Source: Macrostomum lignano (Eukaryota). From it: DNA of 64,000 bases. This document shows, in pieces, positions 135 to 64,000 of the stretch. The notes under the pieces were generated by a model. It was not told the origin of the DNA. It did not search any database and saw nothing but the letters and a program-made list of their open reading frames with translations. Both the position numbers and the translations under genes were made by a program. Position 1 is the first letter of the stretch, and every line of letters begins with the position of its first letter. Where the stretch lies: positions 1-64,000 of the forward strand of contig NIVC01003292.1 in the NCBI GenBank assembly GCA_002269645.1, in the 5' to 3' direction.

Positions 135-3100
135 TCAAATGCTCGTTAGCCATTTGCAGCAGCTTTGATCGGATTCAATGTTCTTAGCAGTATAAGCTTC
201 ATTGTCTATGGCATCGGCAGATTTAGCAGCGGGCTCTGATCCTTGTTCGGCATGCCCGAGGGCTTCGATGCGACTCCTTAACTGGCTGATGGTTTCCGCC
301 TGGGTGCAAGTGGTGCATTTTCAGAGAGAGTCATTCATATGCTTTGACTGTTCCTCGTGTCTACCTTCTCCTCCTCTCCCATCTCCGCTCTCCCTCTACC
401 ATCTCCTATCTCCCTTCTCCCATCTCATATCTCCCTTCTCCTATCTCCCTTCTCCCCTCTCCTATCTCCCTTCTCTCCTCTCCTATCTTCCTTCTCCCAT
501 CTCATATCTCCCTTCGCCCCAAACCGCTCTCGCATTTCCCTTCTATATCCCCCGTATCGACTCTCTCCTCTCCTATCTCCCTATCTGGTCTCTGCATCTG
601 TGTATCTACCATCTAATCTCACACTCAATCTCCAATTCAACTCTATTCTCAAGCCAGTTCCCCTCACCTGCTCCTCAACAGTCAGCCGTGCAGTCTTCAA
701 CTCCTCAGCCAGCAATTCTCGCTCCATCCTGAGTCCATCCAGCATCTCCTGTGAGCAGGCCAGCGTGGCAGTCATGGCGCCTACCTGTCGCTCTCGGTTC
801 TCCTGCTCTTCAACCAGTTCAGCCTCCAGCTCGTGAACCAGAAACGAGTCGTTCTTAAGCAGAGTGGCCCGCATTGCAGACCGGTGCTGATTGGTGGGCG
901 GAGGCGGGTGCGACCTGGCCAGGCTGCTGATATCTGCAGACTCCGCTAGCCGCCTGTGCATATCGCCGATTCTCCTGACTCGAATGTTTACTTCGGCTTC
1001 GATGGCCTCTTTAGTGGAGACGCTCTGAGCAGCGGCCAGCTCCATCTCCAATTTCTCAACTTTATTATTCAAATTTTCCAACTGCTCATCTTGCTGCTCA
1101 GCCTCCGACCTGGCCTCGCCAAGTTGCTCTTCTAATCTATCGATTTTTGCTTGCAGTTCGGCCAGCTTGCGTTTGTGAGCCTCAACCATGCGCTTCTTCA
1201 GGTTGTCGCTGATCCGCTGGGAAGTGTCCAGGTACTCGCGCAGGCGGGTGTCGTGGCGCTCCTGCAAGGGTCAATGGGGAATGGTTTAGTAGTTATAAAT
1301 CAATGTCAGAGGCAAATTTTAAGAATTCAATCGCTAGACTCTAGGAAAAGGAATAGAAATGGCAGATTTTAACCACGAAATGGCAGATTTAACTACAAAA
1401 TGGCAGATTTAACTACAAAATGGCAGATTTAACTACAAAATGGCAGATTTTGAATCTACAAAATGGCAGATTTAACTACAAAATGGCAGATTTTGAATCT
1501 ACAAAATGGCAGATTTAACTACAAAATGGCAGATTTTGAATCTACAAAATGGCAGATTTTGAATCTACAAAATGGCAGATTTTGAATCTACAAAATGGCA
1601 GATTTAACTACAAAATGGCAGATTTAACTACAAAATGGCAGATTTTAGCTACAAAAATGGCAGATTCTGAATCTACAAAATGGCAGATTCTGAATCTACA
1701 AAATGGCAGATACTGAAACTACAAAACGGCAGATTCTGAAACTACAAAATGGCAGATTCTGAAACTACAAAATGGCAGATTCTGAAACTACAAAATGGCA
1801 GATTCTGAAACTACAAAATGGCAGATTCTGAAACTACAAAATGGCAGATTCTGAAACTACAAAATGGCAGATTCTGAAACTACAAAATGGCAGATTCTGA
1901 AACTACAAAATGGCAGATTCTGAAACTACAAAATGGCAGATTCTGAAACTACAAAATGGCAGATTCTGAATCTACAAAATGGCAGATACTGAAACTACAA
2001 AATGGCAGATTCTGAAACTACAAAATGGCAGATTCTGAAACTACAAAATGGCAGATTTTGAAACTACAAAATAATTGAAGAATCTTGGAATAGCATTGCT
2101 CAGTTATATCACAACGTACCTCTTGCAGCTCCTTCTGCTCCTGAAGCTGCTGCTCAAATCGCTCCTCCACCTCGCTCATCAGCCGGTCCCGTTCGGCAAT
2201 GAGCTCGCGTCTAATGCGCATCTCCCGCTCCTCCATCTCCTCCTCTTGCTGCTGCACAGTTTGGCGCAGGTCTCCAATGAGCTTCAGCATCTCCTGCAGT
2301 AGTTTTAGGATTGGATTATCGTTTAATTTAGATATTGAAGTCACTAGATCTATTTATTGAAGCCTCTACATTAATCCAGCTATCTAGACGAGAAATCGAT
2401 AGTTTATCTAGCCGGTTTTTTGAAAACAGATAGAAATGCTTCAGGTCTCACTCTTAGATCTCAGAAATCACCCTTCGATACCCTTCAGGCCTCACCGTTA
2501 GATATCTTTCAGGCCTCACCCTTGGATATCCTTCAGGTCTCACTCTTAGATATCCTTCAGCCCTACTCTTAAATTCATCCGCACTACACTATTGAAAAGA
2601 GCATCATTTAAAGGAGTGCAAACCCACACCTCAAGCACTGCAACTCGCTCATTCCTTACCTCCTTACTACACTGGGCAATGTCGGCCATTTCGAATTCAT
2701 TCGCATCAACGTAGGTCACTTCGTACTGCTGCTCATCCTCGCCATCGGAGTCTTCTTGATGGTCGCCGATCTCGTCTACTATTGGCTCAATTGGCTCAAT
2801 TGGCTTAATCTCCTCCTGTTCATCTTTCTTAGCAACCGTCGTCATAGCAGCCGCAGTAACAACTGTAGCTGTCATAGTTTTAGTCTGATAGACTGGCACA
2901 ATAATAGTAGAATTATTATGACTGCTACTCTTAGCAGTAGCTGTAGTAACCGTAGTAGAAGTCTTATTACTATTAGTAGTAGTAGTAGCCGTAACCTTCC
3001 TAATTCCAATGCCGGGAGAGGCGGCATTCGGAGCGGCCAAGTGAAGCCGGTGCGGGGTCGGCGCCGTCACGGTGATGTTGCTGGCTAGCGCGCTGAATCT

Positions 3101-6100
3101 CAATACGTTTAAAGTGTCATCAAACAGACTGGCGCACCTGCTGATATTCACAATCATAGTGGCCCTGCCGCTGCCGCTGAAGTACGGCTGTATCAACTGG
3201 GTGAGTTTGGACTCGCGGAACGGCACCAGCCTGGCTGATTTCGGATTCTGCTGATTGTGCTGAAGTGTTTCAATGCACCTGCGCAGAGTCAGCAGGCTGC
3301 TGTTGATGCTGCAGGCCTCGCGAGCGCGGTCGTTTGCGCCGATGTTGGCGCCGTATCGGGCTGTGCGCTGGCTCTCTGAACCGGCCAGGTCGCAGAATGT
3401 TAAACTGGACACCTGTTGTTTCCAATGCGTGTTTATGCTGGGCTGTATAATAAACTCTCCGGAATATCTTCATCGGAATTCCCCAGATAAATACAAATTC
3501 AGAATCCTACTTACTGACTGAATTCCCCAGACTCTCTATGTGAATTCTCCAGACTCTCTATGTGAATTCCCCAGACTCTCTATGTGAATTCCCCAGACTC
3601 TCTATGTGAATTCCCCAGACTCTCTATGTGAATTCCCCAGACTCTCTATGTGAATTCCCCAGACTCTCTATCTGAATTCCCCAGACTCTCTAACTGAATT
3701 CCCCAGACTCTCTAACTGAATTCCCCAGACTCTCTATCTGAATTCCCCAGACTCTCTAACTGAATTCCCCAGACTCTCTAACTGAATTCCCCAGACTCTA
3801 TCTGAATTCCCCAGACTCTCTATCTGAATTCCCCAGACTCTCTATCTGAATTCCCCAGATTCTCTATCTGAATTCCTCAGACTCTCCATATGAATTACCC
3901 ATGCTCCCTATCTGAATTCCCCAGACTCCCTATCTGAATTCCCAAGACTCTTTATCTGAATTCCCAAGACCCTCTATCTGAATTCCGCAGACTATCTGAA
4001 TTCCCTAGACTATCTGAATTCCCTAGTAGACTATCTGAATTGCACAACATCTCTATCTGAATTCCCCAGACTATCTGAAATCCCCAGACTCTCTACCTGA
4101 ATTCCCTCGAAAAATGAATCTGAATTCTCTAGAATCCATCTAAATTCCCCCAAAATCCATCTGAATTCCCTAGACTCTCTATCTGAATTCCCCAGAGCCC
4201 CTTACCAATCCAAAATTAGGCGCCTCCTTATCCAAGCAGGTGACCAGGCGAACAGCGAACAGCGAGTGACTCCTGGAGGACTGCTGATTCAGAACGGTAG
4301 CGGCCACGCTCTGGTTCTGTTTGCCCAGCAACACGAGCCTGCAGGCGTCCTGAGCGCTGCACACAGGCAGGCAGCGCAGGCCTTTGATATAAAATTTGCC
4401 TGTCTTGTCCCAACGAACATCCAGAGCAGTCCGGCTCGGCTTCCGGCCGCGTTGAACAATCGGCTCCAGCAGGTCGTACACGACTTCGTTGTAGATCTCG
4501 GCGTACGAAACCCAGACGCAGAAGCGCTTCTGCGATGACGGAACTGACGAAGCATCGCCAATCACTTCGCTGTCTGATTCGCAGGTTGTCGAAGAATCGA
4601 CAGCAGCGTCCGATGACAGGCGGGAATCGAAAATCACTGAATCGCGGGAATTGTTGCACCTGCAGTGGTTTTGCGATGGGGATGCGAGAAAGGATTTATA
4701 TAAGTTGGCTAGGAATTCGATTTAAGATTATTCAGATGGGAGATTTTCCCTGAAAATGGGATATTCTTCAGGAGATGGGAGATTTTAATTAAGAATGGGA
4801 TTTTTTCAAATGAGAGATTTTTCCCTAAAAACGGGATTTTTTCAGAAGATGGGAAATTTTCCCGTAAAATGGGAGATTCTTCAGAATATGGGACATTTTT
4901 CCTTTAAAATGGGATATTTTTCAGAAGATGGGAGATTTTTTCCCTGAAAATGGGATATTATTTTGAAGATGAGATTTTTCCCTGAAAATGGGATTATTTT
5001 CAGAAGACAGGAGATTTTTCCCTAAAAACGGGCGTTTTTTAAAGATGTAATTTTCCCTAAAATGGGATGTTCTTAAAATGGGAGATTTTCCCTGAAAATG
5101 GGATATTCCTAAAATGGGAGATTTTTTCCAAAAAATGGGACATTCTTTAAATGGGAGATTTTATTCGAAAATGGGATTTTCATCAGGATATTGGAGACTT
5201 TTCCCGAAAAATGGGAAACTCGTTACAATATAGGAGATTTTCTGGTAAAAATAGGATATGATGGGAGATTTTTCCCTAAAAATGGGATCCTCTTCAGAAG
5301 ATAGCAGATTTTTCTCTGAAATTGGGAGATTCTTCAGAGGAGCTTCTTTCCCTATTGAAAGGGAAATTCAATAGTTGTAATTAATAAACTGCTGCAAGTA
5401 TACCAACTACAAATAGAAACAACCTACCAGGCGGTTGCCACAGCCTCTCCAGCCTCATAGGACTGCAGTAGGGCTTTGGTTTTCTTAAACGCAGCTTCAG
5501 CATCTCCTCTGGACAGCTGGACAGCTTGGCTAAAACTGTCCGGACGGAATAAACAGCCAGGCTGAGCAGGCGTTGACAACAGGCGGTCGCCAATGTTGTC
5601 GAACAGAGATTTCAGGGCGCGCGGCAGAATGCCGGGTTGGTCGCCGCTGCCCTGCAAAAATGATACGATTAATTTTCTGATTACGCGCTCTGATGTGCCC
5701 CGATGAAAATGGTACCTGTGCCAAAAAGCATCCCAGAGTCACTTGCGTCGCCTTGTTGTAGGTAGGTAATACAGGTAAAATGTAAAAATAAGTGACCCAA
5801 GACTCTGAAACGACCCGGGGCGATTCTACAAATATATCGACTCTGGAGCAAAATATTAGTATCTGAGGAAGTATCTCCCCTCTCTCCTATCTACCTCTCT
5901 CTTATCTACCTCTCTTCTATCTACCTCTCTCCTATCTACCTCTGTCCTATCTACCTCTCTTCTATCTACCTCTCTCCTATCTATCTCTGTCCTATCTACC
6001 TCTACTTATCTACGTCTACTTATCTACGTCTACTTATCTATTTCTCTCCTATCTACCTCTCTTAAGGGGGCCGTAGCCCAGCGGTAGCGCAGCTGCTCTG

Positions 6101-7050
6101 GTGTGCCAGCGGCCCAGGCTCGATTCCAAGTGCAGTCGCATTAATTTGGGGCTGAATTGGAATCTCGACTTGGCTCTGCTCGTGCAATTAACGGCCTTGA
6201 GAGCCAACCCCCCAAGGCGCAGTGAAGTGTACATGCCTAACGATAAAATAAAGTTAGGGCCGCTGTACACTCCTGTGTGAGTGTGTGCCTGTGCGTATGA
6301 CTGCTCAGGGGAGTCAGGCGCCAGGATAACCACAGCCCCTGGCCTCTACATTATAGTATTTATAGCTTCAAAATCCAGCGATGTGAATAGGAGGATTGAA
6401 AGCCAGTCCAACTCACTTGAATAGTATGAGTCTTGCCAGCGCTTGTGACACCATAGCTGAAGACAAGGCCGCTGTGACCTTGCAGCAGCTGCTTGACAAG
6501 GTCAGCCACTGTACCGTCAAACATCTGCGACTGACTGACTGACTCGTTGAACACTCGGCTGAAGGCGAACCGATGCGACAGGCGCTCGCTATCCCGCAGA
6601 TGCCCAGCAGGTGGAGCGTCAGCCGATGCGTTAGCAACAATTGATTTTGGCCCGTCAATTGTGAAGCAGTGCTTCTCTTCGCCAGCAGCGAGCTCGGCTT
6701 CAGTGAGAGGTCGGACTCGCAGGTAGATTTTCATTCGATCCGACACCGCATGCGCTGTTGATGCCGATGCAACGCTGCCAGTCTGCTCTGAGCGGCTGAC
6801 GTCCAGGCTGCTGAATCGCAGCTTCTGACGAATGGACTGCAGTGGCAGTTCAGCTTCCAGCTTGTCAACATCTGGCTGAGGCTGGGGCGCATTGGGGCGC
6901 TTGTTCTGCAGCTCCGCTAGGGTGTCTGGTTAAGTATAAAAAAGAACAGCAGTATCGATTAAATATGATTCTAAATATACAACCTTTGAACTTACACAAG
7001 CCAAGAGACTTGTCGGAGGGCTCTGCAGGTAGACACAGGTTTTTCAACAT
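135..7050 (-). CDS. KIF20: Kinesin-6 family motor (KIF20A/B, MKLP2-like), about 975 aa. Exons: 6996-7050 (tentative first), 6417-6925, 5428-5651, 4206-4659, 2660-3412, 2120-2293, 668-1261, 135-299
   Basis: Motor motifs IYLRVRP, P-loop GVTSAGKT, switch I SSRSH, switch II CDLAGSE and VPFRESKLT. A long insertion after the P-loop exon and the LQHNQQN..RLVPFR segment are typical of kinesin-6; the tail is coiled coil. All junctions are GT-AG and phase-consistent. First and last exons are less certain. Confidence 0.9.
361..600. repeat. Pyrimidine-rich (CT) degenerate tandem repeat in the last kinesin intron
   Basis: Repeated ctcctatctcccttctc-like units; the source of spurious SPISYLP ORFs. Confidence 0.8.
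1358..2070. repeat. Intronic minisatellite, 20/23-bp unit (ctacaaaatggcagatt[ctgaaa]), about 30 copies
   Basis: Visible tandem array filling kinesin intron 1262-2119. Confidence 0.97.
2440..2570. repeat. Intronic 24-bp repeat (gatatccttcaggcctcaccctta), about 5 degenerate copies
   Basis: Tandem units in kinesin intron 2294-2659; expanded in the duplicate at about 22710-22960. Confidence 0.85.
3515..4200. repeat. Intronic 22-bp minisatellite (ctgaattccccagactctctat), about 30 copies
   Basis: Tandem array filling kinesin intron 3413-4205. Confidence 0.97.
4730..5370. repeat. Degenerate intronic repeat, about 20-bp unit (aaaatgggagattttccct)
   Basis: Recurring aaaatggga/gggagatttt units filling intron 4660-5427. 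Confidence 0.85.
5878..6062. repeat. Intronic 15-bp repeat (cctatctacctctct)
   Basis: Tandem units directly upstream of the SINE copy. Confidence 0.9.
6066..6345 (+). mobile_element. tRNA-derived SINE, internally deleted copy
   Basis: Head GGGGGCCGTAGCCCAGCGG (pol III A box) and GGCTCGATTCC (B box); body nearly identical to 42900-43275. Confidence 0.8.
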
Positions 7051-7065
7051 ATTATAGTATATGCC

Positions 7066-9621
7066 CCCTATTGGAATAAATGTTGAAAACTTGTGGACAC
7101 ACGCTTTAGAAAAAGAGTCAAATTATTTTACCGCACTTTATGATTATTAGAAATCATTTTCTGTCGAAATCAAAATTTGCCAACTTTTGAAATCGTAATT
7201 AAAATTTTCCAAAATCAAAATTCAGAAAAACAAAGTTTACTATGACCAAAACTCACTTTTTACTATTGATTTACTGCTCATGCAAAACAAAATACATGGA
7301 TATATAGCGCAAATTAGTTTATTTTTAGCCACTTTTTATACGCTTCCAAAATTTTCACTTCTAAATTGTTTTGAAATCGAAATTCCATTTTGGAAAATCA
7401 AAATCAAAATTTTTGAACATGTCTAAGCATTATACAAGAAATACGAGTGTATAAGCCCCTTCCACAAAGGTATTAGACCCTCTTCCATGTATATTTATTT
7501 TCTAGAGCAGCAGCCAGTAGGAAAAGGGCAGCTTTAATAAAGGGCAATTTAGAAAAAATTTGAAAGTGCGCCAGACACTTTCCGCGGTTTTACAACTTTT
7601 TCCTATAGGGTATATGCCTCTTTAACTGATAGGCATCTCACCTTGAAGGTTTTATTTCATATACAATTATTATTCATCACTATACCTAAAAAACAAAAAA
7701 TAATTATAGCATGGCTTAATTTATTGGCTTTATAAATCTTTTCTACCATCTACGAGGGCTGAGCAATAAGTTTCCGGATGTTGCCCAGACAGAAATAGTT
7801 AGAGAGAAAAAAACAGTTACATCTTTTCAAAGTACTCTCCAGCAGATTCGATGCAAATTTTCATGCGCTCAAACCACTTGCTGAAGCAGCTGGACCAATC
7901 TGAAGCAGGCACCTCCACCGCATGCCGGATGAAGGCCTCCACTGCAGCTTCTGGTGATCCATAGCGGATTCCACGCATCCTGCGCTTGATTTGTGGAAAC
8001 ACAAAAAAGTCGCAGGGGGCCAGGTCGGGGCTGTAGGGTGGATGACCGAGCTTTTGAATGCGCTCTCCGGCCAGAAACTCCGCCATCTGTCATGCCTTGT
8101 GGGCCGGGGCGTTGTTGTGATGGAGAAGGATGCCCCGAGCTCGAGTCCTTGGGCGACGCCTGGAGAGAGCGCTCAGCACTTCTGGCAGGCAAACATTGGC
8201 ATACCAGTCACCGGTGACTGTGCCCTGCTGCACGAGTGGAACCGTGGCCAGATGACCGGTTTTCGCCACAAAAACGGCCACCATCTGCTTCGCCACGCTG
8301 CGCTCTCGCCGAAGCTTGGATGGTGGGTGCCGCCAACTGGAGTCCACTGGGCCGACTGCTGCTTAGTCTCCGGGTCGAAACTATAGATACAGGACTCGTC
8401 ACCACTGACAATATCCCAGACCGAGTTTGAGCTGCCTCCGTTGAATCTGTCGAGCATGGTGCGGCACCAGGTCACCCGAGCCTCCTTCTGCTCCGGAGTC
8501 AGCTGATGAGGCATCCAGCGTGCAGAAATCTTGCTCCGGTTGAGCTGCGAATGCAGGATCGTCCTGATGGATCCTGATGAGATGCCCATCTCTGCCTCTA
8601 TCTGGGCCACAGTCACTCGGGCATCATCCTCAACCATGGCCCGGACAGCAGCAACATTATCCTCGGTCGTCGCGGAGACCGGCCGGCCACTGCGCTCCTC
8701 ATCATCCAGACTCTGCCTGCCGCGTCGAAATTCGGCAAACCAGTCAAAAACGGTGGATCTAGATGTGCTTCATCCCCAAAAGCTCCTTGCAATCGCTCAA
8801 CTTTCTTGCTGCCGCAAACCACTTTTATAATCGTAATAAATCATTGCTCTAAAATGACTCCTATTGAGCTCCATTGTGAATTTGATAGATAGGGTGGGTA
8901 TGCTAGCTTGGTTTGGGTGCTGCACTGGCTATATATGACCAGTGTGTCTGAAACTTTACAAACATTGTACTTATATAATGTACTTGACACCTATGGTGTC
9001 AGATTTTGTCAGCCGCCTCTCAACTATGCACATCCAGAAACTTATTGCTCAGCCCTCATATTGCACATATTGTTACAGTCAGCTAAGAATCATAAAATAG
9101 ATTCATAAAACCAATAACATAAGCTATGCTATTTTTATATAGTATTTTTAAGTATAGGACACATTTAGATTAACCTAGAATGCTGACTTTCTATACAAAA
9201 GGCTTTATGAATATCCATAATTATAAGAAAGCTAAAACATATTAAAAGATAAACATTAGGTCTAGCTCCTATTGAAAGCAATTATTTCTGTGCAAAAAAA
9301 GCTCTTTTTTCAAGGTAATGAAGAAGCATTAAAAGTGGCTAAAAAGTGTATAAAAGAGCGGCTAAAAATAAACTAATTTATGCTACATATGCATATATTT
9401 TGTCTTGCATAAGTAGTAAATCAAGAATAAAAAAAATGAGTTTTGGTCATACTAAACTTTTTTTTAATTTTGATTTTGGAAAATTTTAATTATGATTTTG
9501 GAAAGTAAACAAATTTTGATTTTGACAGAAAATGATTTCTAAGAATCCTAAAATGTGGTAAAATAATTGGACTTTTTATAAAGCATGTGACTACAAGTCT
9601 TTAATATTTATTCCAATAGGG
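7066..9621. mobile_element. Foldback/MITE-like DNA element with about 290-bp diverged inverted arms, hosting a mariner
   Basis: 7066-7350 (ccctattggaataaa...ctatgaccaaaactca...) is the reverse complement, with mismatches, of 9335-9621 (...tgagttttggtcatac...tttattccaataggg). No TSD found. Confidence 0.7.
7751..9060 (-). mobile_element. Full-length mariner transposon with a frameshifted, inactive transposase (ATG at 8874, stop at 7817)
   Basis: 30-bp TIRs including the TA target site (tacgagggctgagcaataagtttccggatg / catccagaaacttattgctcagccctcata). Motifs WMPHQL, SGDESCIY, LHHNNAPAH (second Asp appears mutated) and HPPYSPDLAPCDF are split over several frames. Confidence 0.95.
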
Positions 9622-12400: not shown

Positions 12401-15216
12401 TACGCATTTGTTTCCCGATCGATATTCAGATTGATATTCGAAAACTAACAAAATCTCTGCTCTGCAAAAATATTTTAGAACGCCGTTTGACAGAAAAAAA
12501 AGTGCAACTAAGAACATTGCAAAAATAAAGTTTCAGCTCGATCCGTTACTCTGGCTCGAAATGGCACCGATTTTCGATGTGCTCCCATTTAAAATACATG
12601 TGATTTTATAAGGCAGATTGATATTCGAGTTCGCTCACTTTGGCTTGACCATTCAACATGAAATTTTACACACTAAAAAGTGCAACTAAGAAACCGATAA
12701 ATATACAGTTTCAGCTCGATCCGTCACTCTGGCTCGAAATGGCACCGATTTTCGATGTGCTCCCATTTAAAATACATGTGATTTTATAAGGCAGATTGAT
12801 ATTCGAGTTCGCTCACTTTGGCTTGACCATTCAACATGAAATTTTACACACTAAAAAGTGCAACTAAGAAACCGATAAATATACAGTTTCAGCTCGATCC
12901 GTCACTCTGGCTCGAAATGGCACCGATTTTCGATGTGCTCCCATTTAAAATACATGTGATTTTATAAGGCAGATATCGATATTCGAGTTCGCTCACTTTG
13001 GCTTGACCATTCAACATGAAATTTTACACACTAAAAAGTGCAACTAAGAAACCGATAAATATACAGTTTCAGCTCGATCCGTCACTCTGGCTCGAAATGG
13101 CACCGATTTTCGATGTGCTCCCATTTAAAATACTAGCTACGGTGTGTTCGTCTGTCTGTATGCCACGGCTGTTGCAACTGGATCACCGCTACACTTCAGA
13201 AACGACACAGGATCCCTAAAAAAGTATAGGTGTCACATCTGGCAGGTTTTCCAGAATTACAGTCAAGGAGGAAGCCAGGCGACCTGCAGCACGTGCAACA
13301 GGATGGTACCTAGCCTGATGCTTGTGCTAGAAATCGGACGATTGACTGGGTCGGTAGCAGCTAGTACGCTTGCTATATTGACTACACTTTAAAGGCTTTA
13401 CGAGCGTACAATAGTTATGCTGCTCTCTTCGTTGAAGTTGTTCTTTCCGGAAATAGGCTAATCTACGAGTATTAACGATATATCGCCGATAAGTAGCTAG
13501 TACTAAAACCATTTCACTTGTAGGTAGCCAACAGTGGCAATAAAAGCTAAAAAGGAAGTATATATAAATTAACCATTACTGATATGCTAAATAAAATTAG
13601 GGCAATCCCACTTAACGCTGAAATTAAATTCCTTACGACAGATCGAATGCCCATCCTGCCTGGATTGGTACCACGACAAATGCGTGGCCAGTGGCCCGAC
13701 CGACACCTTTATCTGTTCGAGCTGCCAAAACCTTTTTTCGATCTGAACGAACGAAGCAACTGCAAATTACGTAGTGAATTTAAGCAGTGCTTTTTTAATT
13801 TTACGAGTACATCTAGACTGTTTCTTAAAGCATACTAGGTAATCGTATATTAGGAATTACGAATCGTGCATCTCATCGTTCCTGCAATCGCACAGTTTTT
13901 ATTGTTATAATTTTCCTTTACAAACTCTCATACTCCATCAGCCAGGTGCGGATCCAGGAATTTCTTGAGTGGGGCCTAATGCAATGCTAGATCACCGAGG
14001 GCCTTGGGGCCGGATTGGAAGGGCCGGATCTGGCCCTGGGGCCGAGGGCTGTTGACCCCCTGCTACAGTATAAGTCTTAAATTAAAAGTAAGTTAATCCT
14101 CATATAGCTTCTGAACATTGCAAGGCGAGGCAATAAATAGAATGTACTGCTTGCTTAGTATTGCTTAGGAAAGGCCATTTTTCGGGAAGCAGAGTATTAA
14201 TTGCAACCCCTAATTAGATCCGCAACCTGCCTTCTGTAAGCTAAATACGAGAGCTATACGCTCGTAGAATTTAGCGTTCCTCGTTGTCTATACTTTTCTG
14301 AATGCACCAACATCCGAACAATTAATTTAACAATAAACGAGTCCCAAACAACGTTGTTGCCTTCGTGTGTAAAATTTATGAGAAAGAAATAACGTTTCCT
14401 ATCAAAATAGAACAAAATTTCATGTTGAATGGTCAAGCCAAAGTGAGCGAACTCGAATATCGATCTGCCTTATAAAATCACATGTATTTTAAATGGGAGC
14501 ACATCGAAAATCGGTGCCATTTCGAGCCAGAGTGACGGATCGAGCTGAAACTGTATATTTATCGGTTTCTTAGTTGCACTTTTTAGTGTGTAAAATTTCA
14601 TGTTGAATGGTCAAGCCAAAGTGAGCGAACTCGAATATCGATATCTGCCTTATAAAATCACATGTATTTTAAATGGGAGCACATCGAAAATCGGTGCCAT
14701 TTCGAGCCAGAGTGACGGATCGAGCTGAAACTGTATATTTATCGGTTTCTTAGTTGCACTTTTTAGTGTGTAAAATTTCATGTTGAATGGTCAAGCCAAA
14801 GTGAGCGAACTCGAATATCAATCTGCCTTATAAAATCACATGTATTTTAAATGGGAGCACATCGAAAATCGGTGCCATTTCGAGCCAGAGTGACGGATCG
14901 AGCTGAAACTGTATATTTATCGGTTTCTTAGTTGCACTTTTTAGTGTGTAAAATTTCATGTTGAATGGTCAAGCCAAAGTGAGCGAACTCGAATATCAAT
15001 CTGCCTTATAAAATCACATGTATTTTAAATGGGAGCACATCGAAAATCGGTGCCATTTCGAGCCAGAGTAACGGATCGAGCTGAAACTTTATTTTTGCAA
15101 TGTTCTTAGTTGCACTTTTTTTTCTGTCAAACGGCGTTCTAAAATATTTTTGCAGAGCAGAGATTTTGTTAGTTTTCGAATATCAATCTGAATATCGATC
15201 GGGAAACAAATGCGTG
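12401..15216. mobile_element. Foldback-type element: 730-800-bp inverted arms each made of about four 178-180-bp tandem units, 1.3-kb spacer, 8-10-bp TSD
   Basis: Left arm 12401-13133 is the near-perfect reverse complement of right arm 14414-15216. Flanking direct repeat CAGGATGA at 12393-12400 and 15217-15224, or GCAGGATGAT if the termini are trimmed by one base. Confidence 0.92.
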
Positions 15217-18863: not shown

Positions 18864-19088
18864 GAGGCGATATTTAGATTAACTCGAAGGAAAGTACTAA
18901 CAGAATAAATCAGTGAACGTAATTTTTTGTCCGTAAATCATCTGTCTGTCTATCTGACCGGTATATCAGTCTACAGCCTGAATGCCTGAACCGATTTTTT
19001 TTCAAACTTGCTTTTTTAAAATTAAACTAAATTTATTCATTTATTTGTAGATTGTGCCTCGACTAAATTAAAACATTTTTTATTATTC

Positions 19089-22520: not shown

Positions 22521-22524
22521 TTTC

Positions 22525-44544: not shown

Positions 44545-44580
<36 letters not shown>

Positions 44581-51334: not shown

Positions 51335-53400
51335 TGGCGCCTCCCCTGACTCACCTGAGGTGCCTCCCCTGACTCACCTGAGGCGCCTCCCCTGATTCAC
51401 CTGTGGCGCCTCCCCTGACTCACCTGAGGCGCCTCCCCTGACTCACCTGAGGCGCCTCCCCTGACTCACCTGAGGCGCCTCCCCTGGCTCACCTGAGGCG
51501 CCTCCCCTGACTCACCTGGGGCGCCTCCCCTGACTCACCTGAGGTGCCTCCCATGACTCACCTGAGGTGCCTCCCCTGACTCACCTGTGGCGCCTCCCCT
51601 GACTCACATTTTGCGCCTCCTTTGACTCACCTGTGGCGCCTCCCCTGACTCACCTCTGGCGCCTCCCCTTGACTCACCTGTGGCGCTTCCCCTGACTCAC
51701 CTGAGGCGCCTCCCCTGACTCACCTGAGGCGCCTCCCCTGACTCACCTGTGGCGCCTCCCCTGACTCACCTGTGGCGCCTCCCCTGACTCACATTTTGCG
51801 CCTCCTTTGACTCACCTGTGGCGCCTCCCCTGACTCACCTCTGGCGCCTCCCCTTGACTCACCTGTGGCGCCTCCCCTGACTCACCTGTGGCGCCTCCCC
51901 TGACTTACCTGAGGCGCCTCCCCTGACTCACCTGAGGCGCCTCCCCTGACTCACCTGAGGCGCCTCCCCTGACTCACCTGGGGCGCCTCCCCTGACTCAC
52001 CTGAGGTGCCTCCCATGACTCACCTGGGGCGCCTCCCCTGACTCACCTGAGGTGCCTCCCATGACTCACCTGAGGTGCCTCCCCTGACTCACCTGTGGCG
52101 CCTCCCCTGACTCACATTTTGCGCCTCCTTTGACTCACCTGTGGCGCTTCCCCTGACTCACCTGAGGCGCCTCCCCTGACTCACCTGAGGCGCCTCCCCT
52201 GACTCACCTGTGGCGCCTCCCCTGACTCACCTGAGGCGCCTCCCCTGATTCACCTGTGGCGCCTCCCCTGACTCACCTGTGGCGCCTCCCCTGACTTACC
52301 TGAGGCGCCTCCCCTGACTCACCTGAGGCGCCTCCCCTGACTCACCTGAGGCGCCTCCCCTGACTCACCTGAGGCGCCTCCCCTGACTCACCTGAGGCGC
52401 CTCCCCTGACTCACCTGGGGCGCCTCCCCTGACTCACCTGAGGCGCCTCCCCTGACTCACCTGGGGCGCCTCCCCTGACTCACCTGAGGTGCCTCCCATG
52501 ACTCACCTGAGGTGCCTCCCCTGACTCACCTGTGGCGCCTCCCCTGACTCACATTTTGCGCCTCCTTTGACTCACCTGTGGCGCCTCCCCTGACTCACCT
52601 CTGGCGCCTCCCCTTGACTCACCTGTGGCGCTTCCCCTGACTCACCTGAGGCGCCTCCCCTGACTCACCTGAGGCGCCTCCCCTGACTCACCTGTGGCGC
52701 CTCCCCTGACTCACCTGTGGCGCCTCCCCTGACTCACATTTTGCGCCTCCTTTGACTCACCTGTGGCGCCTCCCCTGACTCACCTCTGGCGCCTCCCCTT
52801 GACTCACCTGTGGCGCTTCCCCTGACTCACCTGAGGCGCCTCCCCTGACTCACCTGAGGCGCCTCCCCTGACTCACCTGTGGCGCCTCCCCTGACTCACC
52901 TGTGGCGCCTCCCCTGACTCACATTTTGCGCCTCCTTTGACTCACCTGTGGCGCCTCCCCTGACTCACCTCTGGCGCCTCCCCTTGACTCACCTGTGGCG
53001 CCTCCCCTGACTCACCTGTGGCGCCTCCCCTGACTTACCTGAGGCGCCTCCCCTGACTCACCTGAGGCGCCTCCCCTGACTCACCTGAGGCGCCTCCCCT
53101 GACTCACCTGGGGCGCCTCCCCTGACTCACCTGAGGTGCCTCCCATGACTCACCTGAGGTGCCTCCCCTGACTCACCTGTGGCGCCTCCCCTGACTCACA
53201 TTTTGCGCCTCCTTTGACTCACCTGTGGCGCCTCCCCTGACTCACCTCTGGCGCCTCCCCTTGACTCACCTGTGGCGCTTCCCCTGACTCACCTGAGGCG
53301 CCTCCCCTGACTCACCTGAGGCGCCTCCCCTGACTCACCTGTGGCGCCTCCCCTGACTCACATTTTGCGCCTCCCTTGACTCACCTGTGGCGCCTCCCTG
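51335..53400. repeat. 23-bp GC-rich satellite (ctgaggcgcctcccctgactcac), about 90 copies, with a 185-bp higher-order period
   Basis: The variant cattttgcgcctcctttg recurs at 51607/51792 and 52552/52737/52922. Confidence 0.99.
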
Positions 53401-54034
53401 AGCGTCTAATCCCATTTTAACCTCTGAGCTCCCACCAAAAGGTATCTATGTATTCTAAACTGGGTTTCAATAATCCAAAAGCTATCCTAGTTGTCTTTTA
53501 GTTTTCCCTACTTGACTCCTCAAGCTGTCTATCAGACTGAAAGTTTTAATTGGTTAAGAAGCTTCTTCTTTAATCAATCATCACAAAAACTTGTTCTATT
53601 GCTCTGCAATTTGAAAACTATTTCTCACCTCTATAAGAATCTGCGCGTTTTATTTTTTAATTTTAACTGCGGAGTTCGCCTGTAAATGACATGTGTTTTG
53701 CTAAGTGTACCACTTTGAAAACTGTGTTCCCTTTTATGTACTCGATGTATTGTTTATTATTCAATAAAATTTATTCGCTTTAATTCTAATGGAGACTGTA
53801 TTATACAGCACATATTAAATAGAGGCTCTCTTACTATTGCAATCTACTTGTGAACATGAAAATGCTTTTCAAATATTGCTTTTCAGTCTTTCTTCTAACG
53901 GCTTCTCGATCGGAACATGGCATGATCCCATTTCATGACGTATTTATGACCGCTTTAATACATCCATGACCAATTTGGGGGGGGGGGGGCGGGCACGTCA
54001 CCACTTCAATTTTAACCGTTTTGCCAAATCGATG

Positions 54035-55075
54035 ACCACTTCGGTGCACATAAGTGATAAATTTGAGACACATGAATGACCACTTTAAGACACATGTATG
54101 ACCACTTTAAGACACATGAATGACCACTTTAAGACAAGTATGACCACTTAGAAACACAAGTATGACCACTTTGGGACACATAAATGACCACTTTGAGACA
54201 CATGAATGACCACTTTACGACGGATTAATGACCACTTTAGGACGCATTAATGACCACTTTAGGACACATTAATGACCACTTTAGGACACATTAATGACCA
54301 CTTTAGGACACGTGAATGACCACTTTAAGACACGTGAATGACCACTTTAAGACACGCGAATGAACACTTTAAGACACATGCATGACCGCTTTAAGACACA
54401 TTAATGACCACTTTTAGACAAGTATGACCACTTAAAAACACAAGTGTGACCACTTTGGGACACAAATGACCACTTTGAGACACATGAATGACCACTTTAC
54501 GACGGATTAATGACCACTTTAGGACGCATTAATGACCACTTTAGGACACATTAATGACCACTTTAGAACACGTGAATGACCACTTTAAGACACGTGAATG
54601 AACACTTTAAGACACGCGAATGAACACTTTAAGACACATGCATGACCGCTTTAAGACACATTAATGACTACTTTTAGACAAGTATGACCACTTAAAACAC
54701 AAGTATGACCACTTTGGGACACAAATGACCACTTTGAGACACATGAATGACCACTTTACGACGGATTAAAATGACCACTTTAGGACGCATTAATGACCAC
54801 TTTAGGACAGATTAATGACCACTTTAGGACACATTAATGACCACTTTAGGACACGTGAATGACCACTTTAAGACACGTGAATGACCACTTTAGGACACAT
54901 TAATGACCACTTTAGGACACGTGAATGACCACTTTAAGACACATGAATGACCACTTTAAGACACGCGAATGAACACTTTAAGACACATGCATGCCCGCTT
55001 TAAGACACATTAATGACCACTTTTAGACACATTAATGACCACTTCAGTACACATTAATGACCACTTTAAGACACA
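54035..55075. repeat. 22-bp minisatellite (aatgaccactttaggacacatt), about 45 copies
   Basis: Direct inspection. Confidence 0.97.
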
Positions 55076-55740: not shown

Positions 55741-57082
55741 ATGCAGGCCTCGTTAATTCTGCAGTTTCTGTGCTGCTGCATCGCCTTCCGCTTCTCGCTG
55801 GGCGCAGAATTCGGTCTGATTGGCTGTTTCAAGGACAACGAAACTCGAGACCTCTCCGGTTTAGTTGGCAAGCCCAATATCGGGCCCTACTCTGTGGTGG
55901 ATTCTGATCGTGTCGTATTTGGCTCATTGACTTTGGAGCAGTGCAGCGAAGTCTGCGCCTACGAAAATTTTGAGTACTTCGGCGTCCAGTTTGAAACTCA
56001 ATGCTATTGTGGAAACTCATATGGTCGCTTCGGAGCTGGCACTGGCTGCAACAAGACTTGCGCGGGCAATGCTGCCCAGATCTGCGGAGGGCTTTGGCAG
56101 AATTCTGTGTACCGGCAGGTCTACCTTCGTCCAGGTGGGATTAACGGAATTTAGAATGTTCCTGTCTGCGTGTTCTGCGTACTCTAGGTACATATCTAAA
56201 ACAGGACTAAATTCATGCATTTCCATTATTTTAAGAATCGTATTGTCAGCGCTCATTTTCGCGCCGCAGGCACTCATTTTAGCGCCACAGGCACTCATTT
56301 TGGCGCCGTAGGCACTCATTTTAGCGCCGCAGGCACTCATTTTAGCGCCACAGGCACTCATTTTAGCGCCACAGGCACTCATTTTGGCGCCATAGGCAAT
56401 CCTTTTAGTGCCACAGGCACTCATTTTAGCGCCACAGGCACTCATTTTGGCGCCATAGGCACTCATTTTGGCGCCGTGAGCGCTACATTTTGGCGCCCGA
56501 AGAAAAATTATTGATTACCACGAGTCACAAGGTGTGGTGGAGGGACAAAGCATTGGCATGTCCCCCCATAGCTTTTACTGGGTGGGAGACATGTCCCCCT
56601 GTCCCCCACCCCCAGTGGCAACGCGCCTGCCTAAAGATCATAAAAATGCATGGCACTGCTCGACTCATGGTTTCTTGAGTCCATTTTAACATAGAACCCA
56701 AATTTACTAAACGAAAAGCTTAATGAATATCAATAGAGCTACGCTCGTATAAGATCAAAATCAAAATCAACATCAAAATTGAACACTTCCTTTCTCCGTA
56801 GTGTCTCCTAAAATTTTCCATGGCTAACTATACTCTTGACCTTTTTTAGTCAGCAGCAAGAATTTCATACGGACAGACCGAATCTACCTGAACGTGACCT
56901 CCACCAGCGGGCCCTTCTATAGCACGGTGCAGCCCGTCAAAAGCCTAGCCGAGTGCCTGGTTCGCTGTGGCGCTGACTGTCAGGCCGTGCTGCTGCATCT
57001 GAACGCCTGCCACCTGCTGAGATTCCCCGTCCTGCCGCACGAGCTCGAGGCCAAAACTAGCGAATTTATCGTTCGCGTGTGA
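55741..57082 (+). CDS. Secreted WSC-domain + PAN/apple-like protein, about 199 aa. Exons 55741-56134, 56877-57082
   Basis: Hydrophobic leader; LIGCFKD..RDL, TLEQCSEVC..FEYFGVQFETQCYCGN and C..CAGNAAQICGG..SVY form a WSC domain; the second exon has ECLVRC..CQAV..C (PAN-like). Phase-1 junction; donor GTGGGA is weak. Confidence 0.85.
56250..56485. repeat. 21-bp intronic repeat (ggcactcattttagcgccaca), about 11 copies
   Basis: Direct inspection. Confidence 0.95.
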
Positions 57083-57134: not shown

Positions 57135-59455
57135 ACCTTAAACATCATCTTATTGAAAACTCTGGTAATTTTTGTTTAACTGTGTGATTAAACACCATCT
57201 TATTGAAAACTACGATAATTTTTGTTTAACTGTGTGATTAAACACCATCTTATTGAAAACTAAGGTAAACCTTGTTTAACACTGTGATTTTAAACACCAT
57301 CTTATTGAAAACTACGGTAATCTTTGTTTAACTCTGTGATTTTAAACACCATCTTATTGAAAACTACGATAATTTTTGTTTAACTGTGTGATTAAACACC
57401 ATCTTATTGAAAACTCTGGTAATCTTTGTTTAACTCTGTGATTTTAAACACCATCTTATTGAAAACTACGGTAATCTTTGTTTAACTCTGTGATTTTAAA
57501 CACCATCTTATTGAAAACTCTGGTAAACCTTGTTTAACTCTGTGATTTTAAACACCATCTTATTGAAAACTACGGTAATCTTTGTTTAACTCTGTGATTT
57601 TAAACACCATCTTATTGAAAACTCTGGTAAACCTTGTTTAACACTGTGATTTTAAACACCATCTTATTGAAAACTACGGTAATCTTTGTTTAACTCTGTG
57701 ATTTTAGACACCATCTTATTGAAAACTCTGGTAAACCTTGTTTAACTCTGTGATTTTAAACACCATCTTATTGAAAACTACGATAATTTTTGTTTAACTG
57801 TGTGATTAAACACCATCTTATTGAAAACTCTGGTAAACCTTGTTTAACTCTGTGATTTTAAACACCATCTTATTGAAAACTACGGTAATCTTTGTTTAAC
57901 TCTGTGATTTTAAACACCATCTTATTGAAAACTCTGGTAAACCTTGTTTAACTCCGTGATTTTAAACACCATCTTATTGAAAACTACGGTAATCTTTGTT
58001 TAACTCTGTGATTTTAAACACCATCTTATTGAAAACTCTGGTAAACCTTGTTTAACTCCGTGATTTTAAACACCATCTTATTGAAAACTCTGGTAAACCT
58101 TGTTTAACTCTGTGATTTTAAACACCATCTTATTGAAAACTACGGTAATCTTTGTTTAACTGTGTGATTAAACACCATCTTATTGAAAACTAAGGTAATT
58201 TTTGTTTAACTTTGATTAAACACCACCCCATCTTATTGAAAACTACGATAATTTTTGTTTAACTGTGTGATTAAACACCATCTTATTGAAAACTCTGGTA
58301 AACCTTGTTTAACTCTGTGATTTTAAACACCATCTTATTGAAAACTAAGGTAATTTTTGTTTAACTTTGATTAAACACCACCCCATTGAAAACTACGATA
58401 ATTTTTGTTTAACTGTGTGGTTAAACACCATCTTATTGAAAACTACGGTAATCTTTGTTTAACTCTGTGATTTTAAACACCATCTTATTGAAAACTCTGG
58501 TAAACCTTGTTTAACTCCGTGATTTTAAACACCATCTTATTGAAAACTACGGTAATCTTTGTTTAACTCTGTGATTTTAAACACCATCTTATTGAAAACT
58601 CTGGTAAACCTTGTTTAACTCCGTGATTTTAAACACCATCTTATTGAAAACTCTGGTAAACCTTGCTTAACTCCGTGATTTTAAACACCATCTTATTGAA
58701 AACTACGGTAATCTTTGTTTAACTGTGTGATTAAACACCATCTTATTGAAAACTAAGGTAATTTTTGTTTAACTTTGATTAAACACCACCCCATCTTATT
58801 GAAAACTACGATAATTTTTGTTTAACTGTGTGATTAAACACCATCTTATTGAAAACTCTGGTAAACCTTGTTTAACTCTGTGATTTTAAACACCATCTTA
58901 TTGAAAACTAAGGTAATTTTTGTTAACCTTTGATTAAACACCACCCCATTGAAAACTACGATAATTTTTGTTTAACTGTGTGGTTAAACACCATCTTATT
59001 GAAAACTCTGGTAAACCTTGTTTAACTCTGTGATTTTAAACACCATCTTATTGAAAACTACGGTAATCTTTGTTTAAATCTGTGATTTTAAACACCATCT
59101 TATTGAAAACTCTGGTAAACCTTGTTTAACTCCGTGATTTTAAACACCATCTTATTGAAAACTACGGTAATCTTTGTTTAACTCTGTGATTTTAAACACC
59201 ATCTTATTGAAAAACTCTGGTAATTTTTGTTTAACTGTGTGATTAAACACCATCTTATTGAAAACTACGATAATTTTTGTTTAACTGTGTGATTAAACAC
59301 CATCTTATTGAAAACTAAGGTAAACCTTGTTTAACACTGTGATTTTAAACACCATCTTATTGAAAACTACGGTAATCTTTGTTTAACTCTGTGATTTTAA
59401 ACACCATCTTATTGAAAACTACGATAATTTTTGGTTAACTCCGCGATTAAACTCT
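57135..59455. repeat. 50-52-bp AT-rich satellite (aaacaccatcttattgaaaactacggtaatctttgtttaactctgtgatttt), about 44 copies
   Basis: Regular array with a few alternating variants, starting about 50 bp after the WSC gene stop. Confidence 0.99.
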
Positions 59456-61137: not shown

Positions 61138-63485
61138 ATGTCGTCCCAGGAGCTTCAGAAAGTTCAGGAACGACGCCCGTTCCACGACTACCCGAGTCGT
61201 CAAGGTCTATACGACCCCAGCCTGGAGAAGGATGCCTGTGGTGTTGGTTTTGTTGTCCAGATCAAAGGCGTGCCGTCCAAGCAGGTGAGCTGCAATTGCG
61301 TCAAATCTTAACTTTTGTTTATATTTCACCACAATAAAAAAATAATCTCGTTTAACCGATCTGCCTGTACAAACAGATCCTGAAGGCCGCTCGCACCATG
61401 CTCCTACGAATGGAGCACCGAGGCGCCTGCGGCAGCGACAACTCGGGCGACGGAGCCGGCGTGTTGACCGGCATCCCGCACGAACTATACGCCGAATCTA
61501 TGAGGTGAGGAACTGATCCGAGTCCAGGTCTCAGGGGAAGGAGAGAGGAGGGAGAACGAGGGAGATTAGGAAAAAAGGAGAGATAGAGTATGAGACGGAG
61601 AGGGGGAGAAAGAGAGGAAGAGAGGGAGAGAGATGGGGTAGACAATAGAGAATAGTATAAGAGTTAGAATTTTATTAATCTACTTACAGTTACACTTACA
61701 GAAGACAAGGCACTTTGAATAGAATGTACTAATGCCTAATAGCCTATGCTATAGGTTGATGCATAGTGGAAAAAGCGGTCTATAATTGTTCTCATTAAAA
61801 CATTAATTGTTACACGCGCTGACCCAGTCGTGCGCGCAGCCAGCCACCCAGTTAAATTATATTTTTCCCAAAACCAGGTTTAAGGTTAATTTTGTCCGAA
61901 TTAGTTGCTTATCTTATCAGTCCTTCCTCTCGCTTACTTGAGCTAAGAAGCTGAAATTCTAGATTTAACTGGTTTGTGTTATCTATTTATATCTCGGTTC
62001 AGGCCGGCCAGATAGCTTTGTGTGATTCAAAACAATTTTTTTATTATATATAGGTATACGTCTCAAAACAACCTGAACTATGCCGATTAGATAGGCCCGA
62101 GTTTATTAATTTCCAACTGTTCTATATTTTCTAAATGTTCTATCTGAACATAAACTTGGGGAACATTTTTCGAATCGGCCTTCTAACGAGTAGTAAAAAT
62201 CTTAGTTAATGGTGTCGTTTCCATTTTCGTATTGTGCGTATTTAGATTTCACCTTGAGGCTTATTGCCTTTATAAGAATCTTCCCAATCGCTAAAAATAT
62301 CCCAAGTCCCCTAGAAATACTCCCATTCTCTAAAATCTCATAATTTCTTCAGAAGTCTCCCAATACGCTTTGAACTGTTCCAATGCCCTTAGAAATCTCC
62401 TAATGCCCTTCAAAATCTCCCAATGCCTTTAGAGATCTCCCAATTCCCTTAGAGATCTCCCAATTCCCTTAGAAATCTCCCAATTCCATTAGATATCTCC
62501 CAATTCGCTTAGAAATTTCCCAATTCCCCTCAGGAATCTCTTAATTCCCTTAGAAATCTCCCAATGCCCTTAGAAATTTCCCAATTCCCTTAGAAATCTC
62601 CCAATTCCCTTAGAGATCTCCCAGTTCCCTTAGAAATCTCCCAATTCCCTTAGAGATCTCCCAGTTCCCTTAGAGATCTCCCAATTCCCTTAGAAATCTC
62701 CCAATTCCATTAGATATCTCCCAATTCGCTTAGAAATTTCCCAATTCCCCTCAGGAATCTCTTAATTCCCTTAGAAATCTCCCAATGCCCTTAGAAATTT
62801 CCCAATTCCCTTAGAAATCTCCCAATTCCCTTAGAGATCTCCCAGTTCCCTTAGAAATCTCTTAATTCCCTTAGAAATCTCCCAATGCCCTTAGAAATTT
62901 CCCAATTCCCTTAGAAATCTCCCAATTCCCTTAGAGATCTCCCAGTTCCCTTAGAAATCTCTCAATGCCCTTAGAAATCTCCCAATGCCCTTAGAAATCT
63001 CCCAAAGCCCCAAGATTCTCATAATTCACTAAGAATTTACCTATTTTCTAAGAATCTAAGGTCAAGGATACTTTGCTAAAAGATCTTCACAGTCTTTTAA
63101 TAATTACAAAAATGCATAAATTGAGTTGACAATTGCTCTCCAGCAAGCAGGGAGTGACGCTGCCCCAGCCGGGGCGCTATGCCACCGGAATCCTGTTCCT
63201 CGAGAACGGTCTTGGCGAGCAAATCACCCAAATGAAATCGATGTTTGTCAGCCTAGTTGCCGAGTGCGGCTTGAACTTTCTTGGCTGGCGCGAGGTTGAG
63301 AAAGATGCCTCGTATCTGGGGCAGGTTGCCCGAGCTTCGGAGCCCATCATTGTGCAGGTTTGTTAATTTTTTAGTTACAAATTTTAGATTTCAGTCATCA
63401 CGTTAAACTATTAATCTAATTATTTTTCCAGGTGTTTGTTTCCGACCAAAATGAGAATTTTAAACAGACTGACTTTGATAAAAAG
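61138..63485 (+). CDS. GLT1: NADH-dependent glutamate synthase (GOGAT), 5' part; continues beyond the window. Exons 61138-61284, 61377-61504, 63144-63357, 63432-63485
   Basis: [14 protein letters not shown] (propeptide followed by the Ntn catalytic Cys), [54 protein letters not shown]; phase-consistent GT-AG introns. Confidence 0.95.
62335..63012. repeat. 20-bp intronic minisatellite (agaaatctcccaattccctt), about 33 copies
   Basis: Direct inspection. Confidence 0.97.
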
Positions 63486-63584
63486 GTGAGCCTTTTTGAT
63501 TGCTTTTTATGAGCGTATTGCAGTTTGAGATAGTGGGAGAGTTGGACAATATAAGAGACTGAGGGCGAATGAAGAGAGATGGAA

Positions 63585-64000
63585 AGGAGAGAGACAGGGG
63601 AGAGAGGAACAGGGCCCAGGGGAGAGGAACAGGGGAGAGAGGGACAGGGGAGAGAGGGACAGGGGAGAGAGGAACAGGGTAGAGAGGGACAGGGGAGAGA
63701 GGAACAGGGCCCAGGGGAGAGGAACAGGGGAGAGAGGGACAGGGGAGAGAGGAACAGGGAAGAGAGGGACAGGGGAGAGAGGAACAGGGCCCAGGGGGGA
63801 GAGGAACAGGGGAGAGAGGGACAGGGGAGAGAGGAACAGGGGAGAGAGGGAGAGGGGAGAGAGAAACAGGGGAGAGAGGGAAAGGGGAGAGAGAAACAGG
63901 GGAGAGGGAGAGGGGAGAGAGAAACAGGGGAGAGAGGGAGAGGGGAGAGAGAAACAGGGGAGAGAGGGAGAGGGGAGAGAGAAACAGGGGAGAGAGGGAG
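63585..64000. repeat. Polypurine repeat, about 15-bp unit (ggggagagaggaaca), in a GOGAT intron
   Basis: Direct inspection; runs to the window end. Confidence 0.95.

Follow-up and report, generated by a model that had tools for sequence, protein, structure and literature searches.

Jeffreys, Wilson and Thein are said to have found in 1985 that hypervariable minisatellites share a G-rich core, a 10-15 bp consensus in human DNA that was obtained through cross-hybridization. The closest described case to the locus reported here is the mouse pseudoautosomal region, in which minisatellites fill most gene introns and for which frequent recombination and unequal crossover have been proposed as the cause (bioRxiv 10.1101/2022.03.26.485930). 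With introner elements, introns generated by transposons, repetitive DNA likewise makes up the bulk of many introns in a gene (Huff, Zilberman and Roy 2016, cited in PMC9481584). The genome assembly of Macrostomum lignano contains 15% simple plus tandem repeats, and its introns are on average 1.1-1.4 kb long (Wudarski et al. 2017, PMC5730564). For this organism, the parts of that report used here give bulk percentages only, without one-array-per-intron organization, splice-site distances or array relatedness, and per-intron minisatellites in Macrostomum were not found described in a literature search. We analyzed one 64-kb window of M. lignano DNA (contig NIVC01003292.1, positions 1 to 64,000), which is the sample for every result below. 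In this window each mapped long intron and the short intergenic spacers carry minisatellite arrays, and exons carry none. We think it probable that these are ordinary fast-evolving minisatellites that grow neutrally in place wherever DNA is unconstrained, with a degree of local copying between neighboring arrays.

The window resembles the mouse pseudoautosomal region in that introns and intergenic DNA are both filled, units measure ~20-35 bp, exons are clean and GC-richer, and one repeat strand predominates, although in the window this predominance is borderline. The two differ in their units, since the mo-2 family dominates in the mouse, whereas in M. lignano nearly each interval has a unit of its own. 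They also differ in extent: the mouse locus, of 700 kb, is a recombination hotspot of a special kind, whereas the M. lignano pattern, known here from sequence alone, is perhaps genome-wide given the 15% of tandem repeats. With the minisatellites of Jeffreys and colleagues the arrays share dispersed, differing units, an apparent short core, rapid change in copy number and, at a borderline level, G/C strand asymmetry. However, the apparent core in M. lignano is only 5-6 nt long, degenerate and within dinucleotide expectation. Introners are near-identical full-length copies with their own splice sites; in the window we found no near-identical whole-intron copies, and neither the flanks nor the units of one intron are related to those of another. 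We conclude that the window is an ordinary sequence class at unusual density, and a striking local example of a genome known to be repeat rich.

Tandem Repeats Finder (TRF) identified ~29 distinct arrays, which together take up 27% of the window (17.1 kb; Table 1; arrays are named below by their first position). Their units of 12-82 bp (plus units of 178 and 190 bp), present in 2-90 copies with 73-97% matches, make them minisatellites, or variable number tandem repeats. Splice sites were placed by GT..AG dinucleotides, an open frame over the junction and agreement with homologues. All six kinesin introns were mapped, and each carries one array, as the initial annotation of this DNA had proposed. 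The same had been claimed for six introns of the gene encoding a FERM domain and a protein tyrosine phosphatase (FERM-PTP); every mapped intron is indeed occupied, but there are five rather than six, and one holds two related arrays. Arrays also occupy both long introns of the glutamate synthase gene (GOGAT; 62295 and 63587 arrays) and the intron of the WSC gene (56248 array), and in all these introns the units measure 15-40 bp. Not one exon base lies within an array, and the only exonic TRF rows are coding (AGC)n/(GCAGCA)n repeats at 44440-44579. As had been noticed earlier, some arrays nearly reach a splice site, with donor gaps of 9 nt in kinesin intron 3 and 13 nt in FERM-PTP intron 5. On the acceptor side the nearest array is ~60-75 nt away. 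Such a gap is in keeping with the need to preserve a branch point and pyrimidine tract, but a sample of 11 introns makes this no more than suggestive.

The share of array sequence is 45% in introns, 0% in exons and 25% in all other DNA. We measured how regular the occupancy is by collapsing each array to a point and dropping it on array-free DNA in 200,000 trials. The mapped introns (n = 11) receive 12 of the 29 arrays, compared with 5.2 expected (P = 0.003). All 11 introns were filled in 0 of 200,000 trials when placement followed array-free intron length (P < 1e-5), and filling all 11 was rare even when each intron had an equal chance (P = 0.0008). Array placement thus does not scale with the length of introns, and occupancy is far too regular for random placement. 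Intron length minus the array is 114-633 bp, with a single exception of 3984 bp. Long introns are long because of the array inside them, and the 91-bp GOGAT intron has no array, so the one-per-intron pattern is partly circular.

This organization is not specific to introns. Short intergenic spacers are just as dense, with array shares of 33% between the LSm and RPB8 genes, 36% between RPB8 and FERM-PTP and 58% between FERM-PTP and the WSC gene; summed, these spacers contain 4616 bp of array in 9731 bp (47%, versus 45% in introns). The overall intergenic share is lower, at 25%, because the region from 6.9 to 32.5 kb contains a pseudogene copy, remnants of transposases and further DNA devoid of arrays.

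Table 1. Genes, introns, tandem arrays and dispersed elements located in the 64-kb window.
Feature	Position	Strand	Description	Basis
Kinesin gene	~300-6929	-	Best matches KIF20A/KIF20B/subito-type	Pfam
FERM-PTP gene	37940-50446	+		Pfam
WSC-domain gene	from ~55738			Pfam
LSm2-like gene	32690-33040			Pfam LSm
RPB8-like gene	35502-35963		Seemingly intronless	
GOGAT (glutamate synthase) gene, first exons	start near 61140			
Kinesin introns	5652-6416, ~4660-5427, 3413-4205, 2344-2667, 1262-2119, ~300-590	-		Frame and GT..AG
FERM-PTP introns	38284-42532, 42867-43939, 45155-45939, 46639-48036, 48629-50165	+		Frame and GT..AG
GOGAT intron 1	61286-61376	+	91 bp, array-free	
GOGAT intron 2	61506 to about 63129			Frame and GT..AG
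Array, kinesin intron 6	360-519		21-bp unit (7-bp sub-period), TCTCCC-type	TRF
Array, kinesin intron 5	1357-2072		23 bp x 32; 83% of intron	TRF
Array, kinesin intron 4	2468-2571		24 bp x 4.4	TRF
Array, kinesin intron 3	3518-4196		22 bp x 32; 9 nt from donor GT	TRF
Array, kinesin intron 2	4734-5338		40-bp unit (19-20 bp sub-period)	TRF
Array, kinesin intron 1	5879-6062		15 bp x 12.5, CT-rich; adjoins SINE	TRF
Array, FERM-PTP intron 1	38331-38595		28 bp x 9, 87-bp higher-order period; donor +47 nt	TRF
Array, FERM-PTP intron 2	43338-43777		37 bp x 12, 110-bp higher-order period	TRF
Array, FERM-PTP intron 3	45342-45780		28 bp x 16; lacks core	TRF
First array, FERM-PTP intron 4	46758-47189		21 bp x 20	TRF
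Second array, FERM-PTP intron 4	47480-47964		29 bp x 17; diverged relative of 46758 array	TRF
Array, FERM-PTP intron 5	48642-49978		35 bp x 38; donor +13 nt	TRF
Array, WSC-gene intron	56248-56497		21 bp x 12	TRF
Array, GOGAT intron 2	62295-63005		20 bp x 35	TRF
Array, GOGAT intron 3	63587-64000		15/30 bp, purine-rich; continues past window end	TRF
Intergenic array, LSm-RPB8	34483-35300		34 bp x 24	TRF
Two intergenic arrays, RPB8-FERM-PTP	36159-37264		82-bp and 32-bp units	TRF
Two large intergenic arrays, FERM-PTP-WSC	51333-55075		23 bp x 90 (51333-53398) and 22 bp x 46	TRF
Array 3' of WSC exons	57138-59448		52 bp x 45	TRF
Inverted partial kinesin copy	22524-24800	+	Matches 360-3292; three shared arrays, altered copy numbers	
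21-nt array-flank block	4703-4723 and 50090-50110	+ (4703-4723)	AGTTGG[C/A]TAGGAATTCGATTT; beside kinesin intron 2 and FERM-PTP intron 5 arrays	
tRNA-like-headed element	6066-6304 and 42900-43138	+	239 bp, 96% identical copies; kinesin intron 1 and FERM-PTP intron 2	

The pseudogene copy allowed the turnover of individual arrays to be followed. This fragment derives from exons and introns at the 3' end of the kinesin gene and lies 20 kb away from the parent sequence. Its last large exon contains a frameshift, and ~480 bp of the low-complexity exon part are missing. Its non-array segments are 94-99% identical to the parent. The 1357 array has gone from 32 units to ~11 (10.9, at 23305-23554), the 2468 array from 4.4 to 10.3 (22715-22962) and the 360 array from 7.6 to 21 (24355-24791). 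Copy number therefore shifts 2- to 3-fold at 1-6% flank divergence, so that within the window arrays change faster than by substitution. The presence of the same arrays at new lengths indicates that they predate the duplication, have remained in place and, in length, far outpace change in their flanks. Arrays described as private to each intron are mostly so: units generally differ between intervals, but three kinesin arrays recur in the inverted copy (22715-24791). The related idea that local sequence was amplified is borne out by units that vary from intron to intron, by arrays with one pure and one decayed end, and by duplicates that keep the unit while changing copy number. TRF also detected higher-order periods of 87, 110 and 249 bp. 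The direction of the purity gradient is inconsistent between arrays, and we rejected a consistent polarity of growth since gradients run both ways. Higher-order periods and two-way gradients fit unequal exchange and slippage.

The initial annotation had further described an ATCCC/ATTCCC core in many otherwise unrelated arrays. The words that it quoted are present in those arrays, and AAATCTCCCA is found in kinesin intron 2 as well as in GOGAT intron 2, on the sense strand of both arrays (19 occurrences, confined to these two arrays). Such a core could be a seed, comparable to the core of the Jeffreys minisatellites: a break-prone or recombination-initiating motif, for example ATCCC/TCCCA, that starts arrays and is therefore shared by unrelated ones. 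We compared 22 short-unit arrays (13 intronic, 9 intergenic) with mononucleotide and dinucleotide-preserving shuffles. AT{1,2}CCC, on either strand, occurs in 7 of the 22 arrays, whereas mononucleotide shuffles predict 1.7 (P about 0.0005 for a motif chosen post hoc) and dinucleotide-preserving shuffles 5.3 (P = 0.20). TCCCA, a word also picked post hoc, occurs in 8 of 22, compared with 1.3 under the mononucleotide null and 3.5 under the dinucleotide null (P = 0.005). For ATCCC the count is 4 of 22, with 1.3 (P = 0.04) and 4.5 expected, respectively. The commonest shared 5-mer, found in 8 arrays, corrects for post hoc choice and gives a P value of 0.017 under the mononucleotide null and 0.41 under the dinucleotide null. 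A search for degenerate seeds gave P values of 0.003 to 0.13, depending on the setting; at one setting the 10-mer TCCCATCTCC (up to 2 mismatches) was present in 8 arrays versus 5.1 expected (P = 0.003). With units this short the dinucleotide null errs on the conservative side, and the truth is therefore to be sought somewhere between the two.

A seed would also fit the presence of the word twice in many units and the excess similarity among units described below. However, the motif was picked from these very arrays, it is at expectation under dinucleotide-preserving shuffles, and it is missing from the large arrays 1357, 2468, 45342, 51333, 54062 and 57138. Nor do intronic arrays of different genes resemble one another beyond a mean z of 0.12. 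No structural propensity was common to the arrays: hairpin-driven slippage was rejected as a general property (DNA folding of unit concatemers gave z of -3.1 to +1.2, with no trend), as was G-quadruplex or i-motif formation (only ~7 arrays contain four G3 tracts separated by loops no longer than 12 nt). Seeded amplification is thus unlikely. The claim of a shared core fared unevenly, since the core does not exceed the dinucleotide null but is absent from intergenic arrays. It is best described as shared composition (C runs with A/T flanks; AT, TC and CC dinucleotides) and not as a recognition sequence; a defined core beyond composition, of the kind seen in the Jeffreys minisatellites, was not found. 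We conclude that something nonrandom persists, though no defined core.

Regular one-per-intron occupancy, a core that is restricted to intronic arrays in the window, and arrays that end before the acceptor-proximal ~60 nt would all be expected if the arrays were selected platforms, as had been suggested. UCCC-type words are the kind bound by the KH domains of hnRNP K/PCBP, and C-rich words in pre-mRNA might bind a splicing factor or a KH-type C-tract-binding protein; alternatively, introns might need a minimum length. Relative to the transcript, however, TCCCA lies on the sense strand of 6 arrays and on the antisense strand of 3; the corresponding counts for AT{1,2}CCC are 5 and 3, and the sense strand is rich in C in 8 arrays and in G in 6. 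A core on both strands argues against a role at the RNA level, and C-richness appears to track the plus strand of the window and not transcription. The 2- to 3-fold copy number changes between near-identical duplicates argue against a size constraint, one 91-bp intron does without an array, and intergenic spacers are equally array rich. Purifying selection to maintain the polypyrimidine tract and branch point would in any case keep arrays away from the acceptor. We therefore consider a selected platform very unlikely. Two further candidates were rejected: mimicry of splice sites (donor-like GT[AG]AG in 1 sense versus 0 antisense units; acceptor-like words in 5 versus 3) and tandem RNA genes (neither a tRNA nor a member of an Rfam family was detected in the window).

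Strand composition was nevertheless uneven at the level of DNA. GC skew is -0.16 in arrays and -0.01 in non-array noncoding DNA, and on the plus strand about 15-17 arrays are C-rich versus 4-7 that are G-rich, a difference that is borderline in a sign test. Arrays in the inverted kinesin copy have the opposite sign of skew, as an inversion would predict. If real, the C-rich plus strand may reflect a DNA-level, possibly replication-linked bias of array growth.

Relatedness between arrays was measured by pairwise local alignment of circularized units. Compared with random noncoding segments of equal length taken from the window, units are more similar to one another (mean z of 0.44 versus 0.07 +/- 0.09), and 16 pairs exceed z = 3, versus 3.4 expected. 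Under the dinucleotide-preserving null the excess falls to the z of 0.12 given above for intronic pairs from different genes, to 0.03 for intron-intergenic pairs and to -0.24 for intergenic pairs. Similarity did not decay over distance (Spearman rho = -0.06; P = 0.33), and only the contrast between same-gene and other pairs was significant. Several arrays have blocks of 10-19 nt in common. The 40-bp unit of the 4734 array shares blocks of 12-19 nt with the 360, 1357 and 2468 units; TCAGATCCCA is common to FERM-PTP arrays 43338 and 46758; and arrays 46758 and 47480, in the same intron, are diverged versions of each other (z of 6-8). Unit similarity suggests occasional short-range copying between neighboring arrays, or their common descent. 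We also observed GCGCCACAGG in both the intergenic 23-bp array (51333-53398) and the 21-bp array of the WSC-gene intron (z of 4.4 under the strict null).

Shared words of this kind could instead be remnants of transposons, if arrays were delivered by, or grew from, the tails of short interspersed nuclear elements (SINEs), miniature inverted-repeat transposable elements, or foldback or Helitron-like elements. Two genes each have an intronic copy of a 239-bp element with a tRNA-resembling head (GGGGGCCGTAGCCCAGCGG...GGCTCGATTCC); both copies are on the same strand of the window, and one adjoins an array. From its sequence it is probably a tRNA-derived SINE; ARAGORN called no tRNA on it. A stretch similar to GCGCCACAGG, TCAGGGGAG...GGCGCCA, is found in the SINE tail (about 6305-6330). 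Beside two arrays there is, in addition, a 21-nt block with 2 matches versus 0.01 expected, the GCGCCACAGG word is shared by the 51333 and WSC-intron units, and one region of the window (12402-15215) is foldback-like. Against this origin, an all-versus-all search of the 150-bp flanks of the arrays revealed nothing shared except the pseudogene copy and that one 21-mer, and units are otherwise unrelated. SINE adjacency is limited to 2 introns, no further SINE copies were found in the window, and terminal inverted repeats or target-site duplications were not identified around intronic arrays. A transposon origin is accordingly improbable.

The foldback-like region consists of two 732-nt arms that are 100% complementary and made of 178-bp tandem units, around 1350 nt. 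Open reading frames (ORFs) in its middle have no Pfam match, and it resembles either an element of the foldback type or an artifact of assembly. The suspiciously perfect arms, and an M. lignano assembly that is reportedly redundant and difficult to build (PMC5730564), would be in keeping with long-read misassembly as the source of the arrays or of their copy numbers. We regard this as extremely unlikely. Arrays have internal variants, decayed edges and higher-order structure, the surrounding frames and splice sites are intact, and the exons fit an independently annotated UniRef model. Misassembly may alter copy number, but not the existence or position of an array.

Neutral growth in place remains, in our judgment, the probable account. 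A short local sequence would be duplicated and would then expand and contract in place, by a molecular route that we infer to involve slippage, unequal exchange and template switching; likely forms are replication slippage, unequal exchange between sister chromatids or homologues, and slippage in break repair. Arrays would survive where a change in length is harmless, that is, in spacers and in introns, outside the ~6-10 nt next to the donor and the ~60 nt next to the acceptor; selection would purge arrays from exons. Should the process have run for long, nearly every old noncoding interval would come to have one array, which would now make up most of its length. Neighboring arrays could be related through splitting of an array or through short-range template copying.

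Four observations weigh against this account. First, same-gene arrays remain alike under the dinucleotide-preserving null (z of 0.87; label-permutation P = 0.001). This similarity holds without the same-intron pair (P = 0.003) and among intronic arrays only (P = 0.014), and it drops to a P value of 0.04 once the hub array 4734 is excluded. Second, TCCCA/ATYCCC words occur in 8 of 13 intronic but 0 of 9 intergenic short-unit arrays (Fisher P = 0.0055), a contrast in which the motif is post hoc, the sample is small and same-gene arrays are not independent. Third, arrays tend to be C-rich on the plus strand in the minus-strand kinesin gene and in plus-strand genes alike. Fourth, there are long array-free stretches (6.9-12.4, 15.2-22.5, 24.8-30 and 38.6-42.5 kb), so that saturation needs the extra assumption that this DNA is younger or constrained; transposase remnants and the pseudogene copy are its only backing. 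A Pfam search for transposon content with ten ORFs from the long array-free stretches gave no matches.

A further reading is that the birth of arrays is itself nonrandom. Breaks in a noncoding interval could be repaired by template switching into neighboring arrays, a short-range copy-and-paste at the level of DNA and not of RNA that would produce the chimeric same-gene units (4734, combining blocks of 360, 1357 and 2468), the single array per interval, and a C-rich strand that follows the chromosome or the direction of replication. We hold this to be doubtful. If true and general, it would amount to a mutational regime of a distinctive kind, one by which intron size is set throughout the genome of an animal, and same-gene relatedness and chromosome-strand bias, if true, would offer a route to studying how minisatellites are born. 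If one array per interval is true genome-wide, minisatellites and not transposons would set intron length in M. lignano. This would also explain why the genome is hard to assemble and would supply very many hypervariable markers. The design of transgenes and knock-ins would be affected, since introns and promoter-proximal spacers would be unstable in length, with arrays 10-50 nt from donors.

The genes that hold the arrays were identified as follows. Pfam confirmed the kinesin motor, FERM plus tyrosine phosphatase, WSC-domain and LSm genes. Kinesin is at most 42% identical to its closest relative in a protein collection search. A UniRef query built from the FERM and phosphatase exons is 100% identical to an M. 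lignano protein and matches two further, alternative models at 97% and 77%. The exons of the UniRef M. lignano models map back onto the window at 99-100%, which identifies the window as DNA of this free-living flatworm. Look-ups of exact products (the RPB8 gene and two M. lignano UniRef proteins) matched no contigs. The LSm2-like and RPB8-like genes are seemingly intronless, and the introns of their neighbors are all filled with arrays.

Two remnants of mariner/Tc1-type transposases were observed, at 8176-8769 (minus strand) and 21669-22049 (plus strand). One has Pfam helix-turn-helix matches; the other was recognized by eye from its C-terminal PYSPDLAPSDYHLF and has no Pfam match. In the FERM-PTP gene, translations read by eye have YPIWTPCLVP at the expected WPD-loop site of the phosphatase, so that the general-acid aspartate is seemingly absent. 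The phosphatase domain (48500-48628 plus 50166-50446) retains the HC(X5)R catalytic loop, LLHCPDGSGRTG. Finally, glycine-rich ORFs are present in several frames at 17308-18880 on the plus strand, with a Pfam match to the ALK/LTK glycine-rich domain (E = 1.4e-8). These ORFs may represent an unannotated or decayed gene inside an array-free stretch.

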